NCBI GenBank assembly: GCA_024704765.1
Contig: JAKMXF010000233.1
Coordinates: 558,001-622,000 of the forward strand
Source: Oopsacas minuta
Lineage: Eukaryota; Animalia; Porifera
DNA length: 64,000 nucleotides
Direction: 5' to 3'
The notes under the pieces were generated by a model. The model was not told the origin of the DNA. It ran no database searches and worked only from the letters and a program-made list of their open reading frames with translations. Below are positions 909-64,000 of the stretch, in pieces. The number at the start of each line of letters is the position of its first letter. Position 1 is the stretch's first letter. The translations under genes and the position numbers were made by a program.

Positions 909-1655
909 GATTGAATACCTATTGAATTGAATGGTAACTAAGATAAATTTTGAGTACTATTTGTTTGAATTTTATTTATTTTGGAGATATTCAAATAAAT
1001 ACCTATTGTATCAAATGGCAACTAGGGTATGAAAATCTCCATAATTATCTGAGAATAGGTTACAAAAGTGTCGACCTATCAGATTTGATGTGTAAGCTGA
1101 TGGTTAATTGATTGTGTACATTTCATAGTGGCATGACATATTTGTAACACCTATCTTAGACTGTAAGTTGATTGGCCTACCATTATCTTAATAAATATAA
1201 TGATTGTGAATATGATTAACGTAATATAATATTTTGTAGAGTGACAGCATAATAGGCTTTCAGTATACATTTAATAGTCCGTTAAAGTTTGTACTTGTAC
1301 TCGTGTATATATTGAGAAATGCATTGTATTTCCTTAACGGCCACTTTCCATAGCTGCCACTTCTCTATAAATGATACTTTTGGCCACCCCCCTTTAGTGG
1401 CAGTTATAGAATGGTTTCAGATTGCTACCGCAAAGTTAGGACTCCGCTGAATAGGATCACAACGGTACCAGGCCTATTTGTCCCGATTAACCAGAGTAAT
1501 TATTTGTATGGTTCTGTTTCTGGACAAGTGACTGAATTAACAGGAGTCTACTGTACATATTAAACCCCTAATTTATAGAAATTATGTACATAGCAACCAA
1601 TACGACGAAAGGTATTTAATTACATTCCTTATAATTATTATTTTAAAATAGCTAG

Positions 1656-14774: not shown

Positions 14775-15430
14775 TTGTTTGCTTTTAGAAACATAAACAA
14801 ATGATAAGTAATTATGATAGGCTCAACATATTCTTAACTAGTAGAGGGTATATTGGATTGGTCCTGTTGTCCAATTGGACGACACTAAAGTTGCATAGAT
14901 GTAAAGTCTTCAAGTGAGCCCCACATATTCGAACACAATAACATTAGCAATTCTCCTTGGATTTCTCGTTTTCTCCCATAATACAACGGAAAATATCAAG
15001 AAGTATTGCAAAAATAGCAAATCTCCCCTAGAATTTCAAAGATCTCCCTTCCCTCCTGGTAAGAAGTACAAGTCCTTTACAACATGCCTAATATTTGTTA
15101 TTCTTGATTTAGCGCGTATATTTCACGCGCCAGAAAACATTCCTTATGATAGCGCCTTCAGCCAAAGAATGACACAAAAGCGCGCTTTAATTCGAACTAA
15201 TAAGTTATCCAATCAGAATCGTATATTCACGGAAGAATCATTACATAGTTTTTCCATCAAACACAACAACAAACAAATATTATCTATGAATTTGTTTATT
15301 ATTAGAAACCATTCTAAAAGGCATCTGTTTTATAAAGTGGCATGGATTCCAGCCAATTTGTAGGCCATCTCATTCAGTTGTTTATAATAGGTTGAGTGGC
15401 AGATTAATAAATTTGAATAAAGTGCTAAAA

Positions 15431-20600: not shown

Positions 20601-23600
20601 GAAGTGGATCAGGTGGCACAACGTGGTACTCAGTGTTATCACCTATTGGATTGTTTAAGGACAAAACACGTGGGGTTTCCTGACATTCCATTTCACCATT
20701 TGTATCACTATCGTTGTCACTAATATCGCCGTTATCAGATTGGGTAGTTCCCTGGATACAAATATTCCGCGCACGAATGTTCCTTAGCGCGTCAACACTC
20801 GCTAAAATCCTATCTTGTTCCATCTTGGCCCATTTTTTCCGGTCCTCTTGTTCCGCTTTCAAGCCCCCCCTCTGCCAAGCGAGGGCTGCGGAACGGTCCT
20901 TATCGAAAACGGGGCGATCGTCCAAATACTTCAAACTCGAAATAGCGCAAATCATATTTTTCCGATAATATTTTATTTTATTTATGAATGGATTTCCTTG
21001 GACAGTTAAGACCCCTAATCTCGGCATCTGACTGAATATATCGACAACACTGGGGTCATCTATCCGGTTATGCTGTAGGTCAAGTATACCTATGTTCACA
21101 CATAGTTTCAGTTCCATAATATCATCAGCTGATTTGAAATAATTATGGGATAGCTGGAGAGTATGTAGTTTTGAAAGGACAGATAAATTTTGTATTTTTG
21201 TGAGGGAATTATTGGCGAGATTAAGAGTGTCGAGCTCAGTTAACTTCTCCAAATTTTCGATTTCTTCAATTAAATTTTGCTGTAAATACAAACATTTTAG
21301 GCCTGTAAGGTTACACAAATTTTCTATTTTGGATATTCCATTGCTTTCGAGCCATAAACACTTCAATCCGGTATATTCATCCAAATTCTCTATTTTTGAA
21401 AAACCTTGGAAATGCAGGTATAATATGTCGTTGAGTTCAGGTGTTAAGTATTGTTCATGTTTCTTACAAATGGCGCGTAGCGATTTTTTGGTCATTTTAG
21501 GATAATTTTCTTCTTTCGTAGTAGACAACATTTCTCGAATATTTGTTGTTTATTTGTTGTTTACAGGAGTGTTTATGCTATAAACAGAATAACAGATGAT
21601 ATTGTTGGTTATGCAAATGATGGAACAATTTGTGGCAACGAAAAGGTATTTTTACTCAAATTGTGGCATGAATTGTGGCATGAATTGTGGCATGAATTGC
21701 CGCTCAAACTATTGACCATTAAAGTGGAATATTTTACACATTTTGCGTAATTCTGGTTGCTATGTTATAAATATTTGGCCAGGTTTGTCAACAAAAACGA
21801 TGTGTAAGTCTATCAAGCATTTCAACACCTGCTTGTCCAATTGGAACTAATGGAGAAGTTTGTTCCGGTCAAGGTTCTTGTAATCAGAATCAAGAATGTG
21901 TATGTGATACTAGATACAGTGGAACCACATGTGAAATCACAGGTCAGAAATATTCAGTCACCTCCTGTTATATATAGAAATATCCGCTTATATAGAAGTG
22001 TGAATTGTACAAATATGGTCCCAAACCGTCAAAGTAACATATGTTTTATCGGTTATATCGAATGATTATCACGGTCCCTCGAGCTAAGATATGACAGGTG
22101 TTAACTTAATAATATAATATACAGATATTCATGTGTGTAGCTATTGATGGTGCTTGGGGTGAATGGGAGAATTGGGGGACATGTTCCCAATCGTGTTTAA
22201 GTGGCACAAGGTCAAGATACAGAAATTGTGACAGTCCAACACCTTCCACTGGTGGCAGTTATTGTATCGGTTCTTATACTGAAAGTGGAACATGTGATGA
22301 AGGCTCTTGTCTGGAACCAGGTTAGTTAGTATTTCCAAAACTTATTTTGCCCTGTGCGGATCACAAACACTGGAATCTGATTGGTGAATAATACCCTTAT
22401 TGGCATAAACCCTCTAATATGATAGGTCAAGACATTTTTGGACCCCTATACCAATTCTAACACAAAATGTGGACCCTTCCCATAGAATGTAATACAAATT
22501 TTGAGATCCTGTCGGCCCCTACTGCCTCCTGTGGATCACCAAGGGGTACAAGGACCCCAGGTTGGTAACCACTAGCTCTGATATTAGAAAATCTGTCTAG
22601 CTGCAAATTCCAATATATTATCACGGGATAGAAATTTGAGTCATAATAAGGTTCTACTTTTAGTTAATGGTGGCTGGGGTGCATGGACCTCTTTCACACC
22701 TTGCTCTATGACATGTGGAGGAGGTAGCATGTTACTGTACAGATCATGTGACAGTCCAGAACCTCAGAATGGTGGAATAAATTGCGTAGGACAACCAAAC
22801 AAGGTGGACAACTGTAATACTCAAGATTGTCCGCCAATAGGTCAGTTTGTGGTTAATATACAAATGACATAATTTTTTGATATATATTAGATGGCGGATG
22901 GGGATTATGGGGGCTGTGGTCAGGTTGTACTCAGGAATGTGGAAATGGAACAAGAACTAGGAGTAGAGAATGTGATACACCAATACCTGCTAATGACGGG
23001 AATAATTGTATTGGAGATTATAGTAAAAGCGAGGATTGTAATACACATGAGTGTGCTGGTAAGTGTTTGTTTGTTTGTTTGTTTGTTTGTTTGTTTGTTT
23101 ATCTGTTTGTTTGTTTGTATATAGTACCAGTAGATGGTATGTGGGGGGAGTGGAATGATTGGTCAAGCTGTACAGCTACATGTGGGGATGGTACTATAAC
23201 AAGAAATAGAGAATGTAATAACCCAGCACCTAGTCATGGAGGTGTTGATTGTGTCGGAATGAATACATCAGTACAATCCTGCAATGAAAGGAATTGTCCA
23301 AGTAAGTTATGAAAAATCAATTTACAATATCAGAAAGGTGTGAAAATTCGCTAGAAACCATTCTAAACATACGTCACACAATTTAAGCGTGTCCTTATCA
23401 CCACAACTCCAAGTGGCGTCTGAACCTAACCTAATTTATCCCCAATAGTTAACGGTGGTTGGGGTACTTGGGGTGCCTGGGGGTCATGTTCCTCTATTTG
23501 TGGTACAAGTGATAGATACAGATACAGACAATGTGACACACCTGCACCACTTTATGAAGGTGACAATTGTGTCGGAGATGAGTATGAAGGTGAAACATGT

Positions 23601-38360: not shown

Positions 38361-41300
38361 TTATTCTAATATTCTAGGATCGATCAGCTGACTCAAATTC
38401 AAAGTATCCTAAACAAAACATAAACTGGAACTATAAATACAGTTAAAATTCGGTGTCTCGAATGTCCTGTTAACTCAAACTTTCATTACCTCAAAAGAAT
38501 TCTCATTTTTCCTCGTTTGAAACCCGATAAATTGAAAAACCGTTCGCTAACAGATCGTAACCACTTCCCTCAAATATTTAACACCTGCCTTAGTCCAAAA
38601 CCGGTCTGAAAACCGAACCGGTACTATGAACTTCCGGTCTAACACCTGCAAATATGGGATAATTATACATACAGTGGAACCTACATAAACCGGGACAATA
38701 TCGGCTCGACTGCTGTATTCACAGATTTTGATTTCCCCTGAAGGTTAGAGCTAACTGTTTATTCATATATAACACTTACAGATGATTGTGTGACACAATC
38801 AAGGTCTTCTAAGCCAAATTTTCCCTCATTTAACTCAGATAAAGTCTGGTTGATACTATTAATAGTATCACTAACATATTCCATTCTCACCATCTGGTTG
38901 TTAGGGTCATAACTTAGCACTTTAGCTCTCCTGTAATCTGATTGGACAGGAGAATAGTCACTGTTCATTTCAATTATCTAAAATTAGAGGATTTGTCAAA
39001 ACAGACCGGAAATGGAGGCCAGCAGAGGTGTGAAAATATGATAAATCATAAAATAGGCAGACTCTAGCAGGCACTATTGGACATCCCAAGATACTGAAGA
39101 ACGATGTTACATATTAGTTTAATTCATTAATGTAAATAAACAAACAAACAAACTAGCAATAAATTTGTAGACAGTAGTTACTATTATATGACACACTAAC
39201 TAATCTCCCGTTTGGAGTTATAGCTATTCCTTGGGGGTAACATAACATTCCTTGTTGGTGTCCCTCTGTTCCTACCGTGTGTAGGAGATTGCCTTCTGGA
39301 GAGAATACCCGAATTGAATGAGAGCGTCTATCGCTAATAACAAAGTTGTTAAGTGGATCTAGACAGAAGGAGAAAGGGTATAACACATCCATTCCTTGTC
39401 CACAGGTAATGAGGGAGTGTATCTTGTCTCCCTCTAGGGTTAGCACGTGCATACACGGGTTGTTAGATGGACACAGCACGTACACGCGGTTACGTGACAC
39501 TTTAACATCATATGGTTCACTCATTGACTGATGAGTAATGTTACGGAGATGGTTCAAGTCTGTGTCGTGTACGCTGATTCTGCTGTTACCTCTATCTGCT
39601 ATAAACACGTGACCAATGGGATCTGTTGTTAGTTGACAAGGAAAGTTGAATTGTCCGTTGTTTGATCCCCTACCTCCTATCTTCCTAACAAGACTCATGT
39701 CAGTTAGTGTGAATTGGCTTACAGTGTTATCTCCCCAGCAGCTGACATACACATTCTCTCTGTGTATAGCTATACCCCATGGACAAATCAGCTGTCCTAC
39801 ACCCAGCTGATTGAGGTATTCTCCTGTATCAGAGAATATCTCTACTCTTTGATTGAGATGATTAGCTACGAATATTTGGTGTGTATCTTCATGTATAGCT
39901 ATACCTGATGGACAAATCAACTCACCAGGATCTGAACCTGTCTTTCCAGTAGCAACAGTGGACGTTTGGAATGTAGCATAATCTGGTACTCCTACTGGTA
40001 CCTGTACGATCTCTCCTAAACGGGAAATGCTCATTTCTAGGTCACGTGTGTCACACTGCCACTGTAATCGGGTCTCTACGGGAATGTTGTTTCGTAGGTC
40101 TCGCATTTTGTCCTCCATTTCTTGGACAATTCTCTCCCTCATGGACTGGAGGGGATTTTCTCTTAATGTTTCTTGGAGTTGTGCTTGTGCCTCGTTCAGT
40201 TGGTCGATCATTTGTTGTCGAGCGATCTTTGCGGCTCTCTTCTCCTCCCGTGTATTGCGGACTAGCTCCAGTAGCTGAACTCTACGGACATTCAGTAGCC
40301 CTATGAGACCATCTATTGTGTGATTGATGTGTGTCTCTATGGGGTCTACGACTTGAGGGGCGATTGCGTAACGTTCTGCCATTTTGATAATTGTAGAATA
40401 GTTGAGTTATGAATTGGTTGCTAGGGATAATCTTGTGTATTTATAGCTGTAATATTAATGTGTGAATAACAAGTAAACAAACAACAATAATCAGATGATG
40501 TGAGTATATTTCTTGTTAGAATAAACACGAGGTTATGCAGGTGTTTGTTATTGTGTCTCGTTGCTAGGATACTGTAAGGAATGTGATTGAAAGTTCTCTT
40601 AGTAAACTTATTTTGTATATTTGCAATAACAAAATATCAAATTTCCTATTTTAATTATTTCCCAAATTAGAATTACTTTAAATTCGAATTTACTGATTTT
40701 GTAAATATTTGTTGTTTGTTGTTCTATTGGGAGATTTATTTCTGTAGATTTCACACCTTTAATTAATTATTTACTCAATAAGATTATCTCTCTGGCTTCT
40801 ATGAAGTGGAACAATAAATACGATTTTGACACCTTTTTCGACACTAAATCTAAACATATCCAAAACTAATCACATTCCTAAGACCTCCTCAGGTTGTAAA
40901 TAAATGAATTATAAATTTACAATTAAAGAGATTAATAATATTTTCACACCTTTCTATAGTTTGTTGTTTATTAATAGTAAGGGTAATTATGTATTTGTTT
41001 ACCTTGAATATTATTACGTCACCAATTTTAGGCGGGAGAGCTGAAGTCACAGCTTGGAGATGAGAATAGCTAGATGGAATGTTATCCAATAACTCAGCTG
41101 ATTTCTAAAATAGAATATAATAAAATACCTATTGACAACAGTGGTAACTAGGCGAATACAGTTAACTTCAGTTATATCTAACACGGATATATACAAATAC
41201 CCGCTTATATCGAGGTGTGAAATTGTACAAATATGGTGTTAAAGTAACATATATATATCACCGGTTATAGTAATTCTCACGGTCCATTGAGCGTAGATAC

Positions 41301-46620: not shown

Positions 46621-49600
46621 ATGTCACTCCCATTCGAGAGAAGTATGGGACAAGATAACATTCATCAAATTCCTAAGCTACAAGACCCTAGAAACCAGAT
46701 TGGTAGATGGGAATGCACTCAATGTAAACATGAATACATTGTTCCTCCTTTGCAGGTTACTGAAAAAAATAAACAAATAAATACAAACAATTAGCAATAA
46801 TTTATATAATTATATCATTTTAGGGAGTTTGTACACTCTGCCACTGTGAAGTTGTTCGACTAATGGATGCATTCCAGAGACATGGTGAGATAAACTGGCG
46901 CCAAAAGGTGTCAAAACTGTAGTTACATATTTCTAAATTTAGGTCAGCCACGGTTCAATCTCTATACACCAACTGCACCACAAGTAATCCCGCCTAATCC
47001 ACACATCAACTCACAACCTGATAGGTCAATATCTGGCCATCTCCATAACATTCCTAACTTGTGTTACATAACAACGGTGGCAGCTCCTGATGAGTGTTAT
47101 GACATGGTTAGTAAACATAAATAACAACAAACAACACATTGTATTATTTAGTTATATTTGTAGCTATCCGCAAGCTGGCTAAACTATCAATTATTAATTT
47201 TGCTAAGAACTGAGACAGACCCACTTGTCTCCTATAAAGAGTTTGGAGCCCTTTTGAAAGGTGTGAAAGGAACACTTTTGAAAGATATTCTATCTTCCAT
47301 GAGAGAGAGGGCTGTTTGTCTGCATGACTACCATCTGGAATGTTTTAGAAGGGTAAGTATATTTGTTTGTTTACTTGTTTGTTTACTTGTGTGTTTATTT
47401 GTTTGTTAGTTTGCTTGTGTGTTGTTTACATTAAACTCCAGTTATAACTATTACAATACAATATGTGTATATAGGAATTACACTTTAACAGAATAAAGAC
47501 CAGCTTTATAACACTTCGTATATTCTTAAGAATATGTGCTAAAATGGAACTAACACCTTTAGAATATATGAAACACTTACTATATATAAATACAGACGAT
47601 CAGTTGGTATATACCCTCCCAGTATATGATGATAATCAACCAGTCATCAGGGATCCAATTATGACAGTTCCAAATGGAACTATGCAGCCTATACATGTAA
47701 GTAAATACCATAGACTCCTTAGCGATAGTTGTTATGTAATGGAATGTTCATTGAATGTATTGAACTGGAATTATAAAGTGTACCCAAGGGGTAAACTGCC
47801 CCTCTTAATAACTTTTGCAAATATTATAAATATACGAATTCTTATAGCCATCAAATTTCCTACCTCCAACGATGCCACAATTTCACATGTCGACACTACG
47901 CCACAAACCACCTATGCCATATGTACATTCACACCACAAACAAGTGCTCTCACCTCGTAAACCCAAACTCAACATTCCACAGAATATAAACAACTTCACA
48001 GCTAAAACTGTCAATAACGACAACAATATTATTGGTCCCAACTGCAGTGATATTTCCCCAGAATTACAAATTTGTAATCCAATTGGTGAAGATTTGTATA
48101 AACACCCTCTTCCTAGAGGTATATTATCGTTTTATTATTGTTTATATGGTTGTTTACTATTAATGTTATTTGATTAACAGGTTGTGCAACTGTGAAAACA
48201 CAGATACATGACATACCAACATCATCAGATGGTTGCCAGGGACCTATTACACCAGACACTCCTAGTATAGAGAGATTAGACTCAGTGAGTACTCCTAGTC
48301 CTGCTCCATTGACTCCAGGAGCAGAAATTATGGACACAAATGGTAAACAATAACAAAATGGTGTAAACATGTAAATAAGAACAACAGCAGGAGTCCACAG
48401 GATCTCAAAATGTGTATGGGGGGTCCAAGAGTTGGGTCCCCCTGTCCTATTGTATGAATTTATTTGTTATATTTATAGAAGCACTACCAGATGCTCGTAT
48501 ACTCCGATTGTTAGATGGTCAGGACATTATCCTCCTTATGAAGGGAGGAGAGCCGCATCTAGCAACACCTCTGCTATATATTGTATTCCCTCAGCTCAAA
48601 CGACATCATATCGATTGTACAAAGTTTGTTGTTATTTGTATAAGAACACTGTAGGCAATCCGTTTTCATGAATTTCTAACACCTCCGTGTTTACATAGGA
48701 GACACCAATTTGGAAATTTGCAAATAAGTATTATTTCGAATAATTATCCGCTAAACATAAACAACAACAAACACTGTTCATTAATTAGTTCCAATAGGAA
48801 CAGACAAGACCTGAACTTACATCCTAAAAATAGTACACAACTAGAAGTAAGAATGTTAAGAGAGTTTGGTATGGTAGGAAGGAAGACATTCAGATGTTTG
48901 TTATTCAGCCTAAGTGACGTTGTGAAAATGGTTAAGAAAGTGGATGTACCAATTCCTGAGTGTATACAGCGGGTAATCAACGGAGAGGTTAGTATACATA
49001 CATACGGTCTATTCTGGGGGGGGGGGGATTTATCGGTTTCAAGCCTGCATTTTCATATTTTACAACACTTTGCATAAGACTTAACACCTCGGGAAATAAT
49101 AATTAGTAGGTGTTAAGCCGAGTACTACTGTATTGTAACTGATTTTATTTACTAAATCACCAGATTTCGGAATTTTCCCTGGAATTCTTGTAACACCTGG
49201 CATAATACAGGATTCCCGTGAGGGCAATTATGCATATTGTCCGGATTAAACTGAGAATTCCATAATTGATTCTATGAAACTCTAATTGTTATTCTTTCAA
49301 TCGCAGACCCCAGGAAATTCTAGGCACTGGTTTGTATATTTTGACATCTGTCAGAAATTGGAGTGTATAATTGATGTTGATTTTAGATCCCAGAGGAGCG
49401 GGCATCACTTCTGACACCTGTGAGGTTAGGAAATGGATTCATAAACAAACCTGTTGGAAATCCTGATAAACAAAAACACAAACAAAATTCAACTGATAAA
49501 GTGAATGACAACAACTCAATACTTGATTGGCCAATGGAAGATAATGATATGAAATATAGCTCTAACGTAAATACAAATATTTGTGACAACAATAAGGTGA

Positions 49601-52600
49601 CTAATATATTAATAAACTAATATCTGGGGTTATATAAGGTGTGAAAATATGATTAATATAGATTTGTCTATAGCGTATAACACCATTTCTTCCTACATCT
49701 CAATCAGCTGTTCAGAGTATTCTGCAAAATAGTAACAAAGATGGACTCACTATTGATTCTGTTGTTTTAAATAATGTAAGTAGTAAACAAATACAAATAC
49801 AATAATAAACAAACAAGCAATTTATATACATATTCTCTCTCATAGCAAGACCTCTCCTGTCTCCCAAAATTCATAGACCTGCCCCCTATCTTACCAGAGG
49901 GCCTAGAGGAACTTGGTCCTGAGTTCTACTCAGCTTCAGAGGGACAATTCTACTCAGCACTAACAACAGAAATGGGTAGAGTAGCATTATTAGCACTTTC
50001 TTTCAAAGGATTCATGATATGCCTGAAGGAGCTGTATCTTAATTATTTGAGCCATGCAGGTAACAGACATACTATGAAGTTTAAGATGAGAAAGTTAGTT
50101 CAGTTCCATAATATGATTTGTATTTTTATTCTGTAAATAATAGTGCATTTTAATACTTACACAAACACACTTAGTGCCTTCAAATATAGTGCCTACAAAT
50201 ATAGTGCCTTCAAATATAGTGCCTCCAAATATAGTGCCTTCAAATATAGTGCCTACAAATATAGTGCCTTCAAATATAGTGCCTCCAAATATAGTGCCTC
50301 CAAATATAGTGCCTCCAAATATAGTGCCTTCAAATATAGTGCCTCCAAATATAGTGCCTCCAAATATAGTGCCTTCAAATATAGTGCCTACAAATATAGT
50401 GCCTTCAAATATAGTGCCTCCAAATATAGTGCCTTCAAATATAGTGCCTCCAAATATAGTGCCTCCAAATATAGTGCCTCCAAATATAGTGCCTCCAAAT
50501 ATAGTGCCTCCAAATATAGTGCCTCCAAATATAGTGCCTCCAAATATAGTGCCTCCAAATATAGTGCCTTCAAATATAGTGCCTTCATATTCAGCTGTTG
50601 GCACAGTTGATAATTTTCGGTTTTGCTATATTTATTGATATATGTTATGGAACTTGAACCTTGAGGTCCGGGAAATGTCCGATTGACATCACAATTGGTA
50701 CATGGGTACATTTTAGGTGTTAATGTGTACCTAAATTTTGCAATTTCTGAGTTAGTATTTTCACACCTTTTTGACGATTAATCATATTCCAAATTATTTT
50801 CCTAAAATAAACAACGTGTAGTGGGAATTTTTATGATGTTAAGTAACAGATACAAATTGTGATTAATCATATTTTAACACCTCTCCAGATTAGGTATAAC
50901 AAGCATGAAAGCGACCAGTTGGCAAAGACATAAATTAGTGGACCTAAAAGCTCTTCCTAGTCTCTGTTCCATTTGTGGATTAATAACATTATCAGAAGCT
51001 AAGAGATTATGCTCTGCTTATAAGTTCTCATTTCCTAACACCTTAGATAATCTAATTAGTCTTACAGATAAGAAATGTAAAAATAGATTATTTGTGTCAA
51101 TACCTCTCAGTGTTTTGGAGGTTAAACCAAAATCTCCTTCAGGTTTGTTTGTTTGTTTGCTTGCTTGTTCGTTTATGTAATTTGTTTGCTTGTTTGCTTG
51201 ATTGTTTACTTACTTGATTGTATATTTGTTTGTTTATTTAGAAAACACAGTCAAATCTGAAATATCAAGTGGAGATGAGAGCGAGACAAGAATTACTAAC
51301 GGACAATATCAAAGTGTCAAAAAAATCACATATGCTAAAGAAGAGGTAAACAAAATACGTCATAATGTTCTCTCCATTTTAACAATTTTAACCAATAGAA
51401 TGCTAAAGTTATGAAGATGTATCTTGCCCAACAACCACTTAACAACTTTGCTACGCCTACTCGCGCGCCTAAAACTACAAAACCTAACCTTAGCAACGCA
51501 ATAGGTACAAAGAAATGCAAAGAATGTGGCCTTGTCCAATCAAGATTTGCTAAGAAATGCTCTCAATGTCATGCCTACCTCCAGGGGTCTCCCTGTCCGA
51601 AGTGTGAAAAATTGAATATAGCGTATTATAGTCACTGCTATTCCTGCTTTACTAAACTTGATAGAAGTAGAAGTGATGACGTAATCAAGCCTAGAGGGTT
51701 AGTTCCAGTTAGATTGCTTCGTATTCTTACCATCCTAATTATATTAAGTGTGAGTATCACATGATTAATCATATTTTCACACCTTTTGGTGAATATTTCA
51801 AAGTTGTCCTAGAGATTAGCTTCCACTGTTAATTAGAGGTAAACAGGGACGGAAAATTAGATTTTGACACTTCCAAATGTCTATCATGAGTATTGACACA
51901 CAATATTAACATTCTTTGCAAAAATAGTTATTGGTTGTTTCCTATAGTCGTATATCAAAGAAGAAGCTTGGAATGTTACCAAACCCTTTAGTTCCAGTTC
52001 TAGTTCCAGATAAACAAAATAGAACTAACACTCCACCAGTTCAAGTTTCATGTATCCGTTGTGGGAAAATAAAAAATACAGGAAAATTCAACTGTCTTAG
52101 ATGTGGAACTATGTTTAAAGTTAGTTCCAGTAAGAAACATGACAACCAAGATGGCCCACAGGAAAGTACTACTATGGAAGATGAATTCTATAATTCTCAT
52201 TCAGGTATGTTATTGCCACAAAAGGTGTGAAAATATGAATATTTAATGCATTTTTTAGATTTGAAGATTGTACTAGAATTATTTGAAAGTTTAAAAGAAC
52301 TGGATTTGGTTTCAGTTCTGGTTCCACTTGTATCTAAAATTAGAACTGAGACCCTGGAAGCAATAGAGAGACAGGAACAGCTGCTTAATGGTATGATTAT
52401 TTACATTTTAACACCCTTGGACAGAGGACATAACATATAATCACATACCACATTCCATGAATCATAGCATTCTATACATGAATATATTCACCAACTCCCT
52501 AACATCCTTCTGTGACGTGAAATGTCCCAGTTTCCATGGTTACCTCGTTGGTATTCGGCTACAACCCTCAGCGAGGGAGGGTATCATTGAAGGGGCTACT

Positions 52601-52896
52601 ATTATGACTTAATTGTTAAATGCTTTCCATATTTTCACACCTTTTTAACAGGTTTGGAAAGTCAAAAGATAACAACTTTGACACAATCAACAGCTGTTAA
52701 TGAAAAAGAAAAATTAGAATCCAAAATCGCAAAATTGAACGAACAACTCTCTGCCACATCTCAAGAAATAGCAATCACAAATCAACAAATACAAACAAAC
52801 AAACAAATTCTGTTACACAAAGACAACAAAATTATTGAGAAAAGACACTGCGTCAATGATTGTGAAAAATTTCTACTCATGCTACCCAGACCGTAA
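46621..52896 (+). CDS. Large multi-exon nuclear-type protein: N-terminal C4 zinc finger, two clear and one possible Ski/Sno/Dach-like domains, zinc ribbons, C-terminal coiled coil
   Basis: WECTQC...CTLC; LDGQDIILLMKGGEPHL...IDCTNTQLEVRMLREFG...RCLLFSLSD (48479-48623 + 48834-48987); ALSFKGFMICLKELY...ATSWQRHKL...ICGLITLSEAKRLC (49846-50093 + 50889 onward); CKEC/CSQC/CPKC/CYSC/CIRC/CLRC; coiled-coil last exon to 52896; some internal junctions uncertain. Confidence 0.65.
50172..50590. repeat. Intronic 15-bp minisatellite tagtgcct(t/c/a)caaata, 27 full units plus one imperfect
   Basis: Exact 15-nt period; one variable position. Confidence 0.97.
51762..51836. repeat. About 75-bp dispersed repeat, inverted copy at 55031-55101
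   Basis: atgattaatcatattttcacaccttttggtgaatatt...gattagcttccactgttaatta in both places, opposite orientation. Confidence 0.8.
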
Positions 52897-53429
52897 ATCA
52901 TCACTTCTATAATAATACATAATATTTATCGCATTTTTAATGTATAATTGGTTGCTATGTCTGCATTAGAGTGTATTTACACATATTTGTTTGTATATTC
53001 GTTGTCAAGCAAGTAATGATTAAATTTATTAATATAATATGAAGTTTAGATTCATCGCGAAAAGGCAATCTTATTGGTTCAATACTGGATTCAAAGGTGT
53101 GAAATCTAAACAAATATAATTCTAAAACAACAAACAACAAATATTAAAGAAATAATTAAAATAGGAAATTTGATATTTTGTTATTGCAAATTATACAAAA
53201 TAAGTTTACTGAGAGAGAACTTTCAATCACATTCCTTACAGTATCCTAGCAACGAGACACAATAACAAACACCTGCATAACCTCGTGTTTATTCTAACAA
53301 GAAATATACTCACATCATCTGATTATTGTTGTTTGTTTACTTGTTATTCACACATTAATATTACAGATATAAGTACACAAGATATCCCTAGCAACCAATT
53401 CATAACTCAACTATTCTACAATTATCAAA

Positions 53430-54659
53430 ATGGCAGAAGGTTACGCAATCGCCCCTCAAGTCGTAGACCCCATAGAGACACACATCAACTACACAATAGA
53501 TGGTCTCATAGAGCTACTGAATGTCCGTAGAGTTCAGCTACTGGAGCTAGTCCGCAATACACGGGAGGAGAAGAGAGCAGCAGAGATCGCTCGACAACAA
53601 ATGATCGACCAACTGAACGAGGCACAAGCACAACTCCAAGGAATATTAAGAGAAAATCCCCTCCAGTCCATGAGGGAGAGAATTGTCCAAGAAATGGAGG
53701 ACAAAATGAGAGACCTACGAAACAACATTCCCGTAGAGACACAATTAAAGTGGCAGTGTGACACACGTGAACTAGAAATGAACATTTCCCGTCTAGGAGA
53801 AATCGTACAGGTACCAGTAGGAGTACCAGATTATGCTACATTCCAAACGTCCACTGTTGCTACTGGGAAAGAAGGTTCAGGTCCTGGCGAGTTGAATTGG
53901 CCATTAGGTGTAGCTATACATGAAGATACACACCAAATATTCGTAGCTAATTATAGCAATCACAGAGTAGAGATATTCTCTGATACAGGAGAGTACCTTA
54001 ATCAGCTGGGTGGAGGACAGCTGTCTTACCCATGGGGTATAGCTATACACAGAGAGAATGTGTATGTCAGCTGCTTGGGAGATCACACTGTAACCCAATT
54101 CACACTAACTGACATGAGTGTTGTTAGGAAGATAGGAGGTAGGGGATCAAACAACGGACAATTCAATAATCATAGACAACTAACAACAGATCCCATCGGT
54201 CACGTGTTTATAGCAGATACCCGTAACAACAGAATCAGCGTACACGACACAGACCTGAACCATCTCCGTAACATTACTCATCAGTCTATGACAAAACCAT
54301 ATGATGTTAAAGTGTCACGTGACCGTGTGTACGTACTGTATCCTGATAACAACCCGTGTATGCACGTGCTAACCCTAGAGGGAGACAAGCTGCACTCCCT
54401 CATTACCTGTGGACAAGGAATGGATGTGTTATGCCCTGTCTTCTTCTGTCTAGATCCACTTAACAACTTTGTTATTAGCGATGAAGGCTCTCACTCAATT
54501 CGGATATTCTCTCCAGAAGGCAATCTCCTACACACGATAGGAACAGAGGGACACCAACAAGGAATGTTATATTACCCCCAAGGAATAGCTATAACTCCAA
54601 ACGGGAGATTAGTTAGTGTGTCAGAGAATGAGAACTACCCTCTACAAATATATTACTAG
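53430..54659 (+). CDS. RING-less coiled-coil + 6xNHL protein, copy B (409 aa, intronless)
   Basis: Same architecture as copies A and C; about 515 bp of upstream DNA shared with copy C. Confidence 0.92.
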   Translation: MAEGYAIAPQVVDPIETHINYTIDGLIELLNVRRVQLLELVRNTREEKRAAEIARQQMIDQLNEAQAQLQGILRENPLQSMRERIVQEMEDKMRDLRNNIPVETQLKWQCDTRELEMNISRLGEIVQVPVGVPDYATFQTSTVATGKEGSGPGELNWPLGVAIHEDTHQIFVANYSNHRVEIFSDTGEYLNQLGGGQLSYPWGIAIHRENVYVSCLGDHTVTQFTLTDMSVVRKIGGRGSNNGQFNNHRQLTTDPIGHVFIADTRNNRISVHDTDLNHLRNITHQSMTKPYDVKVSRDRVYVLYPDNNPCMHVLTLEGDKLHSLITCGQGMDVLCPVFFCLDPLNNFVISDEGSHSIRIFSPEGNLLHTIGTEGHQQGMLYYPQGIAITPNGRLVSVSENENYPLQIYY

Positions 54660-54930
54660 ATTGTTTGTTTGTTTGTTTGTTTGTTTGTTTGTTTATTTGT
54701 TTATTTGTGAATAAAAATTCCGAATTTCAAATTGCTAAAATATATTTATTCAATCCCCGAATAGGTGGCGGGGGCAACTAACACCTCTAATTGAATACTT
54801 GTTTATACATAATAATCTTGCCAAATATACAAACAATAAAATTCAAATATTAGCAATAAATAAATATTCATATTTGGTGATTTGTTGAGGTGTTAATGTT
54901 TAATCGTTTGAATGTTTAACCAATCATTCA

Positions 54931-57900
54931 TCAGGTCATTACAGATGTAATCGCTGTAATCCATTTCTTTGTTTCATCTAAAAATAGAATTATTATGATA
55001 GATATTTGGAAGTGACAAAATAGAATTCTATAATTAACAGTGGAAGCTAATCTGATGTTTTTTGAATATTCACCAAAAGGTGTGAAAATATGATTAATCA
55101 TATTATAATTAGTGTATTTTACTGTATCTAAACTAACAAATCTGATAGGTTGACAATTTGTTATATTTCTATTTTCCTGATTGCTTACGAATATTTGTGT
55201 GATTAATCATATGTACAGTCATGATGATTGTTATAAATATGTGTATATGTATATTTTGACACCTAATTATATACCATTAGCACTTGCAGTGAAGAAATAT
55301 GTCTTAGCTGTTGTAGTGAGTGAAAAGGAGAGCTGACACTCTAAACCATCCTAAAAGATGAGAGAAAATATAAATTAGAAATGGGTCCACAAATCCGTAT
55401 AGAGTACACGAGTGAGAAGGTGTGAACATCTGTTTATATACTCCCTTATGTAACCAGGAAATTCTGGGTGTCCTTCATGGCCGCTAAACTGGCATATTTT
55501 GCGCCAGCCAAGCTAAATACACCTCTGCTAGGTGACAACCCATACATTCTGTGTGTTTAGTATCTATAATGTATACGGAACTAGGATATTGTAGCCACTC
55601 AGTATTCAGACTGACACCTCGTGTATGACTATCAGCTGATTCATACATAATATTTATCGCATTTTTAATGTATAATTGGTTGCTATGTCTGCATTAGAGT
55701 GTATTTACACATATTTGTTGGTATATTCGTTGTCAAGCAAGTAATGACTAAAGTTATTAATATTATTAATAAATTATGAAGTTTAGATTCATCGCGAAAA
55801 GGCAATCTTATTGGTTCAATACTGGATTCAAAGGTGTGAAGTCTAAATAAATATAATTTCTAAAAGAACAACAAACAACAAATATTAAAGAAATAATTAA
55901 AATAGGAAATTTGATATTTTGTTATTGCAAATATACAAAATAAGTTTACTGAGAGAGAACTTTCAACCACATTCCTTACAGTATCCTAGCAACGAGACAC
56001 AATAACAAACACCTGCATAACCTCGTGTTTATTCTAACAAGAAATATACTCACATCATCTGATTATTGTTGTTTGTTTACTTGTTATTCACACATTAATA
56101 TTACAGCTATAAATACACAAGATTATCCCTAGCAACCAATTCATAACTCAACTATTCTACAATTATCAAATGGCAGAACGTTACGCAATCGCCACTCAAG
56201 TCGTAGACCCCATAGAGACACACATCAATCACACAATAGATGGTCTCATAGGGTTACTGAATGTCCGTAGAGTTCAGCTACTGGAGTTAGTCCGCAATAC
56301 ACGGGAGGAGAAGAGAGCAGCAGAGATCGCTCAACGCGAAATGATCGACCAACTGAACGAGGCACAGGCACAACTCCAAGGAATATTAAGAGAAAATCCC
56401 CTCCAGTCCATGAGGGAGAGAATTGTCCAAGAAATGGAGGACAAAATGCGAGACCTACGAAACAACATTCCCGTAGAGACACAATTAAAGTGTCATTGCG
56501 ACATACGTGACCTAGAAATGAGCATTTCCCGTTTAGGAGAGATCGTACAGGTACCAGTAGGAGTGCCAGATTATGCTACATTCCAAACGTCCACTGTTGC
56601 TACTGGGAAAGAAGGTTCAGGTCCTGGTGAGTTGATTGGTCCAGTAGGTGTAGCTATACATGAAGATACACACCAAATATTCGTGGCTAATTTTGGCAAT
56701 AACAGAGTAGAGATATTCTCTGACACAGGAGAGTACCTCAATCAGCTGGGTGTAGGACAGCTGTCTTTCCCATGGGGTATAGCTATACACAGAGAGAATG
56801 TGTATGTCAGCTGCTGTGTAGATCACACTGTAACCCAATTCACACTAACTGACATGAGTGTTGTTAGGAAGATAGGAGGTAGGGGATCAAACAACGGACA
56901 ATTCAACTTTCCTTGTCAACTAACAACAGATCCCATTGGTCACGTGTTTATAGCAGATAGAGGTAACAGCAGAATCAACGTACACGACACAGACTTGAAC
57001 CATCTCCGTAACATTACTCATCAGTCTATGACAAAACCATATGATGTTAAAGTGTCACGTGACCGCGTGTACGTACTGTGTCCTGATAACAACCCGTGTA
57101 TGCACGTGCTAACCCTAGAGGGAGACAAGCTGCACTCCCTCATTACCTGTGGACAAGGAATGGATGAGTTACGCCCTTTCTTCTTCTGTCTAGATCCACT
57201 TAACAACTTTGTTATTAGCGATGAAGGCTCTCACTCAATTCGGATATTCTCTCCAGAAGGCAATCTCCTACACACGATAGGAACAGAGGGACACCAACAA
57301 GGAATGTTATATTACCCCCAAGGAATAGCTATAACTCCAAACGGGAGATTAGTTAGTATATCATGGAATGTGAACTACCCTCTACAAATATATTACTAGT
57401 TTGTTTGTTTGTGAATAAAAATTCCGAATTTCAAATTCCTAAAATATATTTATTCAATCCCCGAATATGTATTGCGTGTACATATTAACATATGGCAGGG
57501 GGTAATACATAATATCAGCTGATTCATACATAATACTGACCAATAGGAAAGTGTTTATTTCTCTTATTTTTATTGTAGGTATTGTTAGCCAAGGTTGATC
57601 TTCCTACACAAAATAAATAAATAAACAGAAAAATAAACAACTAATTTGTTTATGATAGTTTATTAATACCTTTGATTGATATAATTTAAGTGTGAAAAGG
57701 TTAAGAACTGCAAACCAAGTAGACAATTCATTTCTACAAAACAACAACAACAATAATAACATTTGTGAAATATACAAATACAAACAACTCACGTCTTTGG
57801 ATTTCTTTTCCATAATTTTCCTTGACAGACAATATTCTAAAGAGTCAATTAACAGGTGTGAATATTACATATACGCTCTGTACTCCTTGGTTGTCCACGG

Positions 57901-59420
57901 AGGACAGCAAGGAGTACACATTGGTAAAAGTGGACTACTCTAACCTCCAATTCAGGTTTATTTCTTGGCTTGGGTTTAGGTGGAAGATCAGGGCGGGTAA
58001 ATCGCATATGTTTTTTGTTAAATGAAGAAACAGCTGTTAATTTGTTAGTATGCATATCTTTTGCTCCACCAATAGGATTTGGGGGTTGAATTATGTGTTC
58101 TAGTGAATTCCTGTCTGTTTCCATGGTTACTTGGGAAGGATTTATAGTTGTTTTCTTGAAGTTATTTAGAATTGGTAACTAGGAAAATTGCAAAGAATTT
58201 AATTATTTACATACCATACAATTTGCATAGCAACGCATACATACCTTGGGATTTTGTCGCACCGGTAGTGGAGGTGTCATTGGTTCTTTTTTCGCGACAC
58301 CAAACAATTTATCTCCTTGACTACGAGTTCTTAAGTTTGGAATGCTGACATTCAATGTTTCTAAAGTGTAACAAAGATTTTCGTAACATATGACGTCATT
58401 GCTCGAGTATTACTTTATAACACTTACTTGTACTAATTTTAGAACTCTTAGGCATCATAATCGGGTTGTTAGGGTGAAATGCTTGGAATGTTGGTTTAGC
58501 AGGGGGTGGAGGAGGGGGCTTATCGGGACGGGGTACCCTGGGTGGTCCCCTAAAGGATTGAGACCTCCCAGAGTAATTCCTTTGAAAATAAGGTGTTGAG
58601 CTGATTATCTCTAACGACGATAAACACTCATTGGAATTGTGAATACTTTCACATGATAATTTCCTCTCATCACTATGGTGACCAATTCGGTTGTTAGGAA
58701 TGTTCAGGCTGTTAGATGGTGAGTGAGGTGGCAGAGGTGGAGCTTGATTGTGTCCTGATAATGGTTTGGGTCGAATAGGTGGAGGATGGCGTATTGGTGT
58801 TTTTCTATTTGGGACTATCACCTTTTCTGGAACTATGTCATACGTATCTGTCCTATTCTTCTGTGGAATGTTATCAAAGTTTGAAATCTGTTTGATCTTA
58901 AACGGAACTGAAATTGGTTTCAGTTCCGGTTTATGTATAACAGGAACTATATTATTAGAAGAAATATCATGTGTAGATTTAGATTTTAAAATTTCCTCTT
59001 TTTTCCGCTGAGATTTTGGTACAACCTTAGCGTACAGTCTAGGGTGCATATTATACTCCTCTTGGTCCAATTCTTTAGATGAATATGTTCTTATTTTAGA
59101 GTAAACAGTTGGTTGTGTTACGGTATGTAATGAAATTCTATAATTAGTATCATTACATTCCATTCTATTCATTTTAGAGAAATCTAAGTCAGCATAGGTG
59201 CTTACCATCCTTGGGTCACGGTCTGTGGTACTATGTCTCCTCATGAATGGGACTTTTATGTCCGCATAATTTGCACGAGAGAAATTGTCCTGGTGTATTT
59301 TATCTGTGTGGTTTGTTTGACTGAAATCTATGAGTAGATATGTGCCCTCTGTCTCCATATGCTTGACACCTCTGATATCAGAGTAAGTTGATTGGTTGAA
59401 CAAGGAAGAATGGATTTCCT
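54931..59420 (-). CDS. Tyr/Pro-rich adaptor with C-terminal PH domain; 5' end unresolved
   Basis: Large exon about 59420-58420; PH domain assembled in phase from exons 57836-57793, 57733-57670, 57603-57541, 55350-55275, 54977-54931: NIVCQGKLWKRNPKTNELSTWFAVLNLFTLKLYQSKEDQPWLTIPTIKIREINTFLLDGLECQLSFSLTTTAKTYFFTASANDETKKWITAITSVMT*. Confidence 0.8.
55630..57535 (+). mobile_element. 1.86-kb inserted NHL gene cassette (55653-57512) flanked by an exact 23-bp direct repeat
   Basis: tatcagctgattcatacataata at 55630-55652 and 57513-57535; removing the insert leaves a 307-bp intron in the PH gene. Confidence 0.75.
56170..57399 (+). CDS. RING-less coiled-coil + 6xNHL protein, copy C (409 aa, intronless), nested antisense in intron 57540-55351 of the PH adaptor gene
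   Basis: Same architecture as copies A and B; AATAAA at about 57414. Confidence 0.92.
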   Translation: MAERYAIATQVVDPIETHINHTIDGLIGLLNVRRVQLLELVRNTREEKRAAEIAQREMIDQLNEAQAQLQGILRENPLQSMRERIVQEMEDKMRDLRNNIPVETQLKCHCDIRDLEMSISRLGEIVQVPVGVPDYATFQTSTVATGKEGSGPGELIGPVGVAIHEDTHQIFVANFGNNRVEIFSDTGEYLNQLGVGQLSFPWGIAIHRENVYVSCCVDHTVTQFTLTDMSVVRKIGGRGSNNGQFNFPCQLTTDPIGHVFIADRGNSRINVHDTDLNHLRNITHQSMTKPYDVKVSRDRVYVLCPDNNPCMHVLTLEGDKLHSLITCGQGMDELRPFFFCLDPLNNFVISDEGSHSIRIFSPEGNLLHTIGTEGHQQGMLYYPQGIAITPNGRLVSISWNVNYPLQIYY

Positions 59421-60487
59421 ACAAATATACAAAGTTATAAATAATGTAAACAACAACAAATAACAGAAATTTAGTAAGATTGAATATACATTTTTGGTGA
59501 AAAGTCTAGTGTCAAATATTTGTAGACAAGATCCGTATAATATGAATATAAAATGTGACACAATGAACCACCAAATTATCCAATATTTTTATTACAAACA
59601 ATCCTCTATAACCATTCCCTGATTATCATATCAAATATCCCCGCGCGTTTTTACAGAAATCTCCCGCTCGTTTTTATAGAAATTACGTAGATTCACCAAT
59701 GAAATTCAACCGCCAATTATCAGAAAACACCCGCCAAATACTCATAAAATAATTACAAGTACATAATTGGCGCGATTTTCTAAATGGCGCTTAAATATGT
59801 ATGCCTATAACTTACTGAGCTGTTCATTGGCGCCAAATTAATTTGTGCATATCCGTTCTCCATCAAAAGACTTTATATAGTCTTTCTTTGTGACTAATTA
59901 GATTAGCGATTGGCACTTATTAGCTTCTCCAAGCTGAGAACCTAGAAGCCAATTGGTCAATCAAATCCTTTGTTCTATAATGCAACGAATTCTAGGAGAA
60001 TCAAAGTCCGAGTGGCACCAATGTGTCACAAATTAAGGCTTTTCAACATTTACGATAATTAGAACATACTGTTTATTAGATTGATAGTAATATGAGTGTA
60101 TTTTCAACCTTTTAAGAGAAGATTTTTTCACAGGACACATTCTAACACCTTTTCATACGTCATGATTATATTCATAATTGTCCCATTGTACAATGAACCC
60201 AGTTCTTATAGAACCAATTACCCCCTTTATATTACTGCCGATTTCACACCTTTTTAGAATATATTATTATAACTCGTATTTTCATATTATTTATATGTGC
60301 ATATTATTTAAAATTTCCTAATAACATAAGCTAGTGTAATATGGAACTATAATTAGAATTGTGTCATAACTGACATGGACATGGTTTCAGCCATAAACAG
60401 AACTGTCAAAAAATGGCCACTATCCCCCTTTTATTGTTTAGTTATATTCGTAATTAGTGTACATTCCACATTCCATATTCCGTTGTC

Positions 60488-63400
60488 ATGACAGACCTAG
60501 GAGAGAATCTAGCAATGAGACCAACTCCCTCTCCAATTTCTTCTGAGAAGATATTTATTAGATTACACAAACAGGAATATGCAGCTGGTGATGTCATATA
60601 TGGGTAAGGTATATTCACACAAATATTTGTTTGTTTACTCGGTTTTATTTCGTAAACAAAAATTGATAAATATAAACAAATATTCACTGATTTACACATT
60701 CCTTTCTAGACTTGTGTATCTATGGGTGAGTGCGCCAGTTGCGTCACAACTTCTAAAAATATCTATTCAAGGATTCGAGGAATGTGAGTTACCATGGCAA
60801 CCATCCCTCTACGGAATTCTCACCATAGTTACGTATAGGTACATTTGAAATGTGGGAGAGTGAACCGAATCCTGATGACGTCAAGAACCCTATTAAGCGT
60901 AGAGTAGAGAGACACAATAAACGAGACACTATTCCCAAATTTGAGGAACAGCTGGCTTCCTATCCACGTGAGTTATATTTATAATGACAACAGATTGTTG
61001 TTGTTATTCTTTGTTGTTGTTTATAGGTGGATTTCCTTTGGGTTATTTTTATTATCCGTTCAAATATGAGTTGCCTCAGGTGATGCCAGGTTGTTTGTTT
61101 GTTTGTTTGTTTGTTTGTTTATTTGTTTGTTTGTTTGTTTGTTTGTTTGTTTACATGTTTATTTGTTAGGCAGCTTCTTCTGTAAACTAGGAGAGTCTGG
61201 CGGTCTCAAATGGAATGGAATGGTTAGATACATAATAAGAGCTTTTATCGACATTCCAGGAGCACACCATGATCTCTGGGTAACATATATATCTTTATAA
61301 ATATCAACAGACTTGTTTACGTGTTTATTACTTATAAACTATTGAATTGGTGCCTGTGAGCATGCTTAGATATACACCATGTGTAGGTGTTACTAATTTA
61401 ATTGATCTGGAAGTATGACTGTTGCTATTATAGGTAGAAGAAGAACTGTTAATCAGAGAGGCTAAGCCTAGTATCAGTGCTCTGTCTAAATCAGTAATGA
61501 ATACACAGGTACAATCTTGCTTCTGTATACCCAGGGGAATGATTGAGGTGTCTGCATGGTGAGTATCTAGTTCTTGTTGTTATTTATTTGTTTGTTCGTT
61601 ATTTGTGGGTGTTTGTAAGAGCTATAGCAGCTGTTCCCCCTTGTACCTGTTGTAACACCATTCTGTGGACCCCTCTGTCCTCCATGTACCACCAAGAGGT
61701 CCATAGGGTCAGGTTATTGTTGTTGTTATTATTAGGCTAGATAAGAATGTATACAGACCAGAAGAGAAGCTAACAGTACACTACACTATTCGTAACACCT
61801 CAGCTGTTGATGTACAGTATCTGCTAATTAAGGTTAGTATCATATTTTCACAAGCTTGTGTATATGTACATGTTTCTGGGCATACCTTTATAGACATATT
61901 TTCACACCTTTTAGCTAGTGCGTGTGATTAAACTGAGTGGTAATGAACCAAATAGACACAAACCCTTCATTCAATCTATGTCCTCATCTTCTAAGGGATT
62001 GCTACACGGTATTAATTATGACGTCACGACGTTACCACATACAAAGGATACCTCTACAAATATGCAAGTGTTATTTACACTATCACAAAACGGATGTAGA
62101 CATAACCAGAGTGTTAATAGGTAACTAAGGAGTGATTAAGGACAGTAACTCCCCGTTATAACAAAGTGACCCTCTGTAGCAGAGGTTCCCATTCTCTCTA
62201 CCCAGATACCTCAGGGTATACGTGGTTTACTGTATGGTATTTAAGAGGTGTCCTTCGCAACCGAGCGGTGACTTAAGAATGTTAAATATCCAAATATAAT
62301 TACTAAACTTGTTTCTGTTTTAGAGATGCTAATACTACTCTAACACCTGATTCTGGCGGTCAAACTATATACCCTACAACACATGCTTATAATATAAAGG
62401 TAGTTAGCACTTCACACCTTTATTCATGTTATTATTTGTGTTTATTAGTGTACATATGTGCTAGACATAGAAGTAAGAGCTAAATGGTCTGCGAGTATAA
62501 TACTTACATTACCAATACTGGTTATGCATTCACTGGATCAACAGGTTAGCTGTTTGTTTGTTTGTTTGTTTGTTGTTTGTTTACTTGTTTGTTGTTATTA
62601 TTATTTACTTACCAGTGGATGGATTGGAATGCTCCTATCTGGAGTAAGAAGTGTTCTATAGTACAGGTACCAGGAGAATATGGAGTTACTAATTCAGAAA
62701 GTATGTTACTATAATAAGATTTATAGTTCCATATGCAGTAGACTCCGCTTAATCGGGTCAAAATGGTTTGGTACCGATGTGACACTATTAAGCTGAGTCT
62801 CTGGATAGTTCCAGTTACAATTATTCTAATAAACAACAACAAATTTAATGAATTAAGCCAGCTGTTCCCAACCTGCGTTGAATTAAGCGATATAATTCAA
62901 ATTGGAACCAAGTTTCCGGATAGTTTCAATTTCAGTTGCTAATTAAGTTATTTATTCTATTTTAGTAACAGAACATTTCTCAGGGAACCCAGGTGTTAAA
63001 ATATGAATAATTCTTGTAAATTTGTTTATTTGTATTTTTAAGATGTTTGATATTTTATTATTTGTTGTTTCTAATAAATCTAATTAGCAATTTGTTTGTA
63101 TTTACTACACATACACAGATTATTCACGCTATTTCATAATTATTTTTATTTATTTTGATTATTTGTCCTCCTATCTGTATGTATATTAGTTACTTAACCA
63201 TGGATGGCGAATTTGTATATTATAATATAAGAAATTCACCATCCATGGTTTTAGAACTAATAAGCATACTGGCTGTCATTATCTTTAGGTTTTCCTCTCT
63301 TTTGAGTTCTTCTCGACACAATATGTCACTATATCTAAGTAATATATATATATTATTGGCTGACTTATTATCCATGGTCCAGTAGACTAAACAGTGTAAT

Positions 63401-64000
63401 CTCCTTAAGCAGAGTACTAAGGACATCGAATAATGCTAATCTGTTTGTGGAGATTAATTTGTATGGGGCTAGTATATTTTCAATCCATTTCCACAGACCT
63501 CTTTTGTGGAGGTTCACTGTATCCAATTGTCTCTATAATATCCCTAGTCTACCCCTTAAGGGTTGTACTGTGGGTACCTGTCTTCGTATCCATGGCCCAA
63601 TATAATCCCATCAAGTTGTCATATAATTGAACTAACTCCTTGTTGTTAATTAGCTGTATGGATTTTGGTTCCCAACACGTATATGATTACGCCTGTAGTG
63701 ATGATGAGGTGATAGCTGAGGATGACTTTTCTAACCCTCTATACGCCAGGTTAGTATATTCACATCTTTATTTGTGCCCCTTATAATTGTGTCGGTTGTG
63801 TAGTGATGATGAGGACGATTATGATCTACCTGCTCCACCACCACCACCACCACCTGTCAGTTTGGCAGAAACTGATTATTTAGCTAATATTGCTGGTGAG
63901 TTATTTGTATATTTGTTTGTTTGTTTATTTATTTATTTATTTATTTGTTTATTTGTTTACTAACAGCTCCACCAACCGGTCGTTCAGTATCACCACCAGC
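60488..64000 (+). CDS. Arrestin-domain (alpha-arrestin-like) protein, multi-exon, probably continuing past the window
   Basis: IFIRLHKQEYAAGDVIYG; GFPLGYFYYPFKYELPQVMPGSF; GMVRYIIRAFIDIPG; CFCIPRGMIEVSAWLDKNVYRPEE..V...IRNTS; CTYVLDIEV...LTLPILV; assignment of exons after 62700 is less certain. Confidence 0.75.

Follow-up and report, generated by a model that had tools for sequence, protein, structure and literature searches.

Fork stalling and template switching (FoSTeS) and microhomology-mediated break-induced replication (MMBIR), and synthesis-dependent repair in general, are described mainly from human copy-number variants and experimental systems, and they are the processes closest to the locus reported here, where an intronless NHL-repeat gene, copy C, lies inside an intron of a PH-domain gene of the glass sponge Oopsacas minuta, beside a second copy, B (assembly GCA_024704765.1, contig JAKMXF010000233.1; the window is the whole stretch of 64,000 nucleotides that was analysed, and all coordinates refer to it). 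The likeness lies in a local template of the same orientation, in two junctions that each have microhomology (10 nt at one, 2 nt at the other), in a short target duplication of the kind left when the strand returns, in an irregular tail, and in a palindromic target. Unlike the FoSTeS/MMBIR cases, C is a complete promoter-bearing gene that sits intact in an intron and is fixed, and the copied stretch stops exactly where the microhomology recurs, an end point not predicted by the model. Human templated insertions also draw their template from elsewhere in the genome and leave the donor in place, and come as class 1, with duplication of the target site (TSD), poly(A) and a TTTT/A target, or class 2, with microhomology and no TSD (PMC5110952); C, with a TSD and microhomology and no poly(A), is a hybrid that fits neither, and differs also in having its template 2.7 kb away and in including the promoter. 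Pack-MULEs and Helitron captures resemble C in moving a host gene that has no transposase of its own, and Cryptons in being flanked by short direct repeats that derive from a core common to circle and target, but C has neither terminal inverted repeats (TIRs) nor Helitron ends, its TSD is 23 bp long, it is one of two copies, and no recombinase was found. Nested genes are numerous in glass sponges, with 2432 in Aphrocallistes vastus and many single-exon genes in both glass sponges (PMC10282587), and C is like them an intronless gene in the intron of another; neither the NHL family nor the origin of nested genes is mentioned in the genome papers of O. minuta (PMC10280926) and A. vastus (PMC10282587). 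The locus therefore offers one gene nesting at base resolution in these compact, nested-gene-rich genomes: over a distance of 2.7 kb a gene and its promoter were copied whole to a position 6 nt from a splice donor, the host gene staying undamaged.

We put at about even the chances that copy C is a fixed, one-off, DNA-templated insertional duplicate of neighbouring B and not a transposon. The inserted DNA occupies 55653-57512 on the plus strand, and comprises 517 bp of upstream region, an intact gene (coding sequence (CDS) 56170-57399, 409 aa, with an N-terminal coiled-coil-like region followed by an NHL propeller) and 113 bp downstream. It is bracketed, as the first-pass annotation had it, by two exact copies of the 23-mer TATCAGCTGATTCATACATAATA, at 55630-55652 and 57513-57535. 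The left copy represents the target sequence and its last 10 nt are the decamer ATACATAATA; the last base of the right copy is position +6 of the minus-strand host donor GTCAGT (57540-57535), which bears out the intron position at which the repeat had been said to start, and the duplicated 23-mer leaves intron positions +6 to +28 unchanged beside the exon. The insert begins TTTATC and finishes ...CATAA, with no A or T run at either junction. In a like scan of nine NHL copies, flanking matches other than this 23-mer were of 9-13 nt only, the AT-rich background, and at four further loci there was no flanking repeat of at least 13 nt. The target site is a quasi-palindrome (TGTATGA CT ATCAGCTGAT TCATACA; 55622-55647, z=-2.2), a plausible site for a stall or break.

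The host is a PH-domain gene on the minus strand. A spliced model of five exons (57836-57793, 57733-57670, 57603-57541, 55350-55275 and 54977-54931, the last with the stop codon) encodes a product that matches the PH domain from end to end (PF00169, E=2.7e-5, at the gathering score), and it is the splicing that restores this C-terminal domain; the individual exons gave no Pfam match. Between the exons at 57541-57603 (upstream) and 55275-55350 (downstream), the host intron (55351-57540, minus strand) measures 2190 nt, and removal of the 1883-bp period leaves a normal intron of 307 nt, as had been proposed. The earlier reading of a real intron with a true flanking duplication stands, then, with the correction that the host runs on the minus strand and C is nested in it antisense. 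The public annotation splits the host into a 536-aa gene (57454-59827) and an 82-aa gene (54931-55648), both on the minus strand and flanking C.

The insertion is real, and the sample from which the reads come shows no empty allele. Contigs built independently from public reads (two runs of one sample, most likely the assembled one) cover 55079-55672 at a depth of 102 and 57383-57888 at a depth of 133, with 0 differences, where unique flanks stand at about 100; the left contig is unbranched at 55652 and ends where its 31-mers become common with B. Because these contigs cross both junctions without differences at flank-level depth, C is not an assembly artefact. The empty 307-bp allele that the first-pass annotation suggested looking for did not appear in this one covered sample, there being no joint that skips 55653-57535 among the joints listed from the contigs; in reads of two other organisms the host intron had no coverage. 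The flanks specific to B and C have a depth of about 155 when the two copies are added together, where unique DNA stands at about 100 and the core that other family members share at 1000-4300.

Copy B (52915-54814 from decamer to decamer, plus strand; CDS 53430-54659, 409 aa, its NHL part closest to the propellers of TRIM71, Thin, TRIM2/3 and Brat) fills nearly all of the 2034 bp between the stops of two convergent genes, a Ski/Sno-like gene (52896) and the PH gene (54931). B (52915-54766) and C (55643-57470) align at 93% identity, the homology setting in exactly at the decamer with unrelated DNA outside; both are intronless, and the alignment takes in 515 bp 5' of the ATG, the intact 409-codon open reading frame (ORF) and a stretch beyond the AATAAA, the very content that had been ascribed to the unit. 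Within the unit as first described, homology extends from the left decamer to 54766/57470 and fails over the final 35-39 nt before the right decamer (p=0.32). In C this tail (57471-57504) contains a palindrome, ATATGTA..TACATAT, between CCCC and GGGGG, and it can be reconciled with the B tail (54767-54804) only by a 25-nt palindromic insertion and a 28-nt deletion in C; no template for the unaligned tails was found in the window or in the loci examined. We read such an irregular, palindrome-bearing junction tail as typical of template switching.

The decamer ATACATAATA occurs 6 times in the window (52915, 54805, 55643, 57505, 57526 and 61228) against 0.66 expected, and five of the six occurrences belong to the ends of B and C. 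Its coordinates agree with the earlier claim that it marks both ends of B (52915-52924, where B-C homology starts, and 54805-54814), both ends of C (the right one, 57505-57514, overlapping the 23-mer by 2 nt) and the target. In about 110 kb of loci outside the window it occurs once, with no NHL gene adjoining, and this rarity makes its presence at the right ends of B and C unlikely to be chance; at about 1 per 100 kb elsewhere, its presence in the target is not chance either. Since the 23-mer stands on both sides of C, the target must already have carried the decamer, and since B-C homology starts at the target decamer, the left junction amounts to a 10-nt microhomology, in support of the role in the junction first suggested for the decamer. 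At the right junction 2 nt (TA) are in common, and the donor B remains intact. Simple tandem duplication does not account for this arrangement, as was argued at the outset, because 54815-55629 has no second copy after C and the PH exons between B and C are single. Copying at the DNA level, also proposed earlier, is favoured by the promoter carried along, the lack of a poly(A) tail and the unrelated flanks. The junctions point to short-homology copying and away from a transposase.

The copy itself, its two junctions, the homologies and the intact host exons are seen in the sequence; from them we infer the direction from B to C, a DNA and not an RNA template, and the following order of steps. 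The target would have been the quasi-palindromic site 6 nt into the PH-gene intron, already holding ATACATAATA. Upon break repair or a stalled fork, a free 3' end would switch template to B, 2.7 kb off on the same strand: the leftward-growing strand would depart from the intron at 55630, land through 2 nt (TA) on the outer edge of the right decamer of B, copy B leftwards as far as the left decamer, and re-anneal there to the intron's own decamer, 23 nt behind its departure point. On this path those 23 nt would be copied twice, the return behind the departure point being what creates the 23-bp duplication, and a single event would give the exact present sequence. A staggered break with 23-nt 3' overhangs would yield an equal product. 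The divergence of B and C (flanks 3-4% different; synonymous divergence (dS) 0.07) fits an old, fixed event.

Several points weigh against a one-off templated insertion. The copy stops exactly at the second B decamer (54805), which a simple template switch does not require, and this hints that the decamer pair itself defines the unit, whether as a circle, as a recombination site or as a 10-bp TSD of B's own. The landing at the right decamer depends on 2 nt of homology, and the event is single, so that its mechanism is not generalisable. The pre-insertion sequence has neither an empty allele nor an outgroup site from which to be read. We assume that copying ran from B to C; a single low-depth contig of another organism, which crosses the B left junction at about 90% identity, is all that hints at a greater age of B.

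The decamer pair is put to a different use if C is a non-autonomous mobile cassette, an explanation we regard as unlikely, though the least so among the alternatives. The pair would then be a terminal repeat or recombination core, and a circle made from B (decamer plus body, its joint running from the right tail through the decamer to TTTATCGC) would integrate, or be copied for one turn, at a genomic decamer, with a recombinase or Rep acting in trans. This would account for the presence of a decamer at each of the four unit ends, and in the target as well, when the background is about 1 per 100 kb. If a circle that bears the decamer were copied for one turn, with the target decamer as primer, the insert would extend exactly from decamer to decamer, as it does; the family, too, is dispersed as single genes, with several copies antisense between host exons. 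Against it, only two copies have these ends, judging by the single-copy depth of the flanks, and no decamer stands beside the eight members examined outside the cluster; the decamer flanks B and C and sits in the target, and among the copies examined it is confined to these two. B has no TSD apart from the decamer, and the additional 11 nt plus decamer to the right of C would need a staggered cut or a prior 21-bp tandem. The joint from 54814 to 52915 that a circle or tandem copy would produce is absent among the joints listed, all but four of the total, and read contigs drop rare forms; the circular intermediate envisaged earlier is possible, and no evidence of it was found.

No TIRs were found at B (best inverted match p=0.20), and the inverted match at C is the palindrome inside the target 23-mer. 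The TSD is 23 bp at C and at B there is none beyond the decamer itself, which departs from the fixed lengths of TIR superfamilies; to our knowledge these make TSDs of 2-11 bp, and one of 23 bp fits none of them. Helitron features (5'-TC, 3'-CTRR, insertion at A/T) are lacking and a 23-bp duplication is present, where a Helitron makes none; 3' terminal hairpins are no better than shuffles (z=-0.35 and -0.60). No transposase, reverse transcriptase (RT), Rep or recombinase was found within 10 kb, nor among window ORFs of at least 200 aa, which are ordinary host genes. For eight family members outside the window, the genes called over 5-10 kb to each side include no transposase, RT, Rep or tyrosine recombinase. 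The first-pass annotation, which saw no poly(A), TIRs, Helitron end, transposase or RT, holds for the window and the loci searched. A candidate nick site of a CRESS-type Rep across the left junction was rejected, the boundary being 2 nt off and no stem-loop present. Ends differ between copies too: A and D, two further NHL copies nearby, end at (TTTG)n and at about -280 to -300 of the ATG, and B and C at -515 and +155. The proposal of a mobile element with defined ends is consequently not supported, given single-copy flanks of B and C and different ends of A and D, and the comparison of ends across family copies that had been advised turned up no other decamer or TSD at A, D or nine other copies examined.

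A broader form of mobility, which we think improbable, would make the NHL gene and its upstream block of about 290 bp a transposase-free mobile gene of glass sponges, spreading by way of a DNA intermediate, perhaps a circle, that short homology would let be copied into breaks. If true, C would be the one recent event with junctions still legible, and an explanation would be at hand for the sharply bounded copies, which number in the hundreds across two or more species, and for part of the hexactinellid nested-gene load. The family is large. A search returned 929 proteins at E<=0.001, nearly all of 405-409 aa; eighteen O. minuta members are 73-91% identical, and many members in a second organism (ENA assembly ERZ25766962) are 64-69% identical. 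The 409-aa proteins encoded in the window are present on the O. minuta contig record, and proteins of that species are their nearest relatives. Four copies, A to D, lie within 27 kb, the fourth, an addition to the first-pass annotation, standing just outside the window. Copy A (39134-40661, minus strand; CDS 39153-40382) has only the family core in common with B, C and D and ends in (TTTG)n past its stop; copy D (window-equivalent 65526-66755, minus strand; L006:19357-20586 and L007:8001-9230) is 95% identical to B, and its ATG is 343 bp from the called start of a Sec23-like gene, a start that falls inside the D upstream element. B is matched by A and D as closely as by C (93-95%), and the homology of A and D to B runs only from about -280/-300 to the (TTTG)n right after the stop, with differing flanks beyond; a possible extension of homology between the B left flank and the A upstream region beyond 53060 was rejected (p=0.5). 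Among 13 copies every pair is homologous only from about -210/-300 to +1220/+1290 (a core of about 1.55 kb), and this applies also to pairs of 94-96% identity whose members lie on separate contigs and to one pair of the second species. Two sets depart from it: D, L001 and L003, which have a 230-bp upstream extension in common, and B and C, which alone have the decamer, a left flank of 235 bp and a right flank of roughly 100 bp; the ends of A, D and the nine other copies are different. Members occur as dispersed single genes among unrelated genes, and two others are apparently antisense between host exons, in a USP32-like gene of O. minuta and a myosin gene of the second species.

Sharp, recurring core edges of this kind could mean a defined mobile unit, and we do not accept them as proof of one, because gene conversion among the copies, evident from their site patterns, would keep the same edges. 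The copies are mosaic, with incompatible patterns at 24 sites (AD|BC) and 19 sites (AC|BD), identical runs of up to 410 nt, far above expectation, and 100% identity of A and C across 217 nt of the upstream block. Such conversion, with selection on promoter and ORF, would hold the core edges in place, and could equally mimic a lack of fixed ends. Within the spread of this large family, C is a single event that can still be read.

Two ordinary steps in place of one could also have led to the present arrangement, which again seems improbable to us. Unequal exchange or slippage between decamers (52915 x 55643) would give a 2728-bp tandem of B and the last PH exons, and an 817-bp deletion would follow, the leftover 11 nt and decamer now resembling a TSD. 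Microhomology-mediated tandem duplication and deletion are both common, B and C are adjacent in the same orientation, and on paper the two steps give exactly the sequence now seen, down to the TA where the deletion would have been joined. The cost is two events where one suffices, and a deletion that must hit the outer edge of the right decamer exactly and clear the duplicated exons cleanly; no remnant of a second spacer is left.

Target-primed reverse transcription (TPRT) of an unspliced RNA spanning the cassette, such as an antisense or read-through transcript, is a little less probable still; the decamer of the nicked target would pair with the RNA 3' end as primer, and the second strand would be nicked at a distance of 23 nt. 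To the geometry of TPRT belong a long TSD whose length varies, microhomology where priming occurs and an irregular far junction, and C, with its exact 23-bp TSD, fits it; about 12 nt ahead of the unit's left boundary there is also a minus-strand ATTAAA. What a retrocopy should further show is missing: there is no poly(A) or other tail, no A or T run and no TTTT/A-type target, the promoter is included, the copy taking in 515 bp 5' of the ATG, no RT turned up nearby, and the template would need decamers at both ends. Interspersed repeats of O. minuta, almost all unclassified or DNA transposons (PMC10280926), also count against it. Last, that C or its 23-bp repeat was made by mis-joining near-identical paralogues has next to no probability, for although the identity of B and C is 93% and the family is rich in copies, C differs from B at many sites with its ORF intact, and contigs of two runs span both junctions without differences at the depth of unique flanks.

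Returning to the insertional duplicate and what it carries, the protein consists of an N-terminal part of about 140 aa followed by NHL repeats (PF01436, E=9e-23), with the propeller at residues 143-405 or thereabouts matching TRIM71, Thin, TRIM2/3 and Brat at E values from 1e-35 to 1e-14. It resembles TRIM-NHL proteins (TRIM71/LIN-41, Thin/TRIM32, TRIM2/3, Brat) in the propeller and the preceding coiled-coil-like region, and differs from them in having no RING or B-box by Pfam in its 409 aa, in being intronless, in its very many copies and in a propeller ratio of non-synonymous to synonymous substitution (dN/dS) of about 1. The locus thereby draws attention to a large RING-less TRIM-NHL-like family with mosaic exchange between copies. 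The ORF is intact at 409 codons in all four of A to D, and dN/dS ranges from 0.85 to 1.4 over the propeller and from 0.4 to 0.5 over the N-terminal part. The NHL domain evolves fast and swaps segments with neighbours; binding of variable targets would be our guess at the family's role.

Upstream of the ORF, the conserved block of the core (53149-53429 in B, plus strand) is 98-100% identical among A to D, more conserved than synonymous sites, and alignable between the two species. It contains two copies of CCTAGCAAC, which we take to be RFX half-site-like, and one of TATAAATA, about 60 nt before the ATG; the motifs lie at 53233-53262 and 53383-53400 and have equivalents in all copies. Because this block comes along with the gene, copy C is probably expressed.

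In the second organism (ERZ25766962), two NHL copies 96% identical to each other (L008:10001-11230 and 19242-20471) stand 8 kb apart in opposite orientation, one of them antisense between myosin exons, and have a 410-nt run in common with zero differences. In every NHL copy a (TTTG)n trails the stop codon, and with it family homology reaches its 3' edge; tracts of this kind are very frequent throughout the window (for example 3746-3811, 23062-23119, 47354-47419, 61090-61163 and 63905-63957), often directly 3' of a GTAAGT or GTGAGT donor.

A further repeated motif, AGGTGTGAAAATAT, was considered as the TIR of an NHL-carrying element and rejected, as its 29 sites in the window lie at intron starts and ends of unrelated genes. 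Together with its palindromic full form AGGTGTGAAAATATGATTAATCATATTTTCACACCT it is found 29 times against 1.4 expected (52222-52236, 52629-52642, 55078-55103 and 26 more), often exactly at the intron start (AG|GTGTGAAAATAT) and, inverted, just before the intron end; in three organisms the reads over 55065-55108 reach 100 to 1900 times the depth of single-copy DNA, and the motif may be an introner-like miniature element. Elsewhere in the window are an NHL-repeat ORF of greater length (659 aa), a caspase-domain ORF and a TRAF-type RING/MATH gene (6113-8092, 8752-9522 and 15392-16834, respectively), and, inside the span of the Ski/Sno-like gene, a tandem array of some 30-40 units of 15 bp with a consensus near AATATAGTGCCTCCA (50052-50680).

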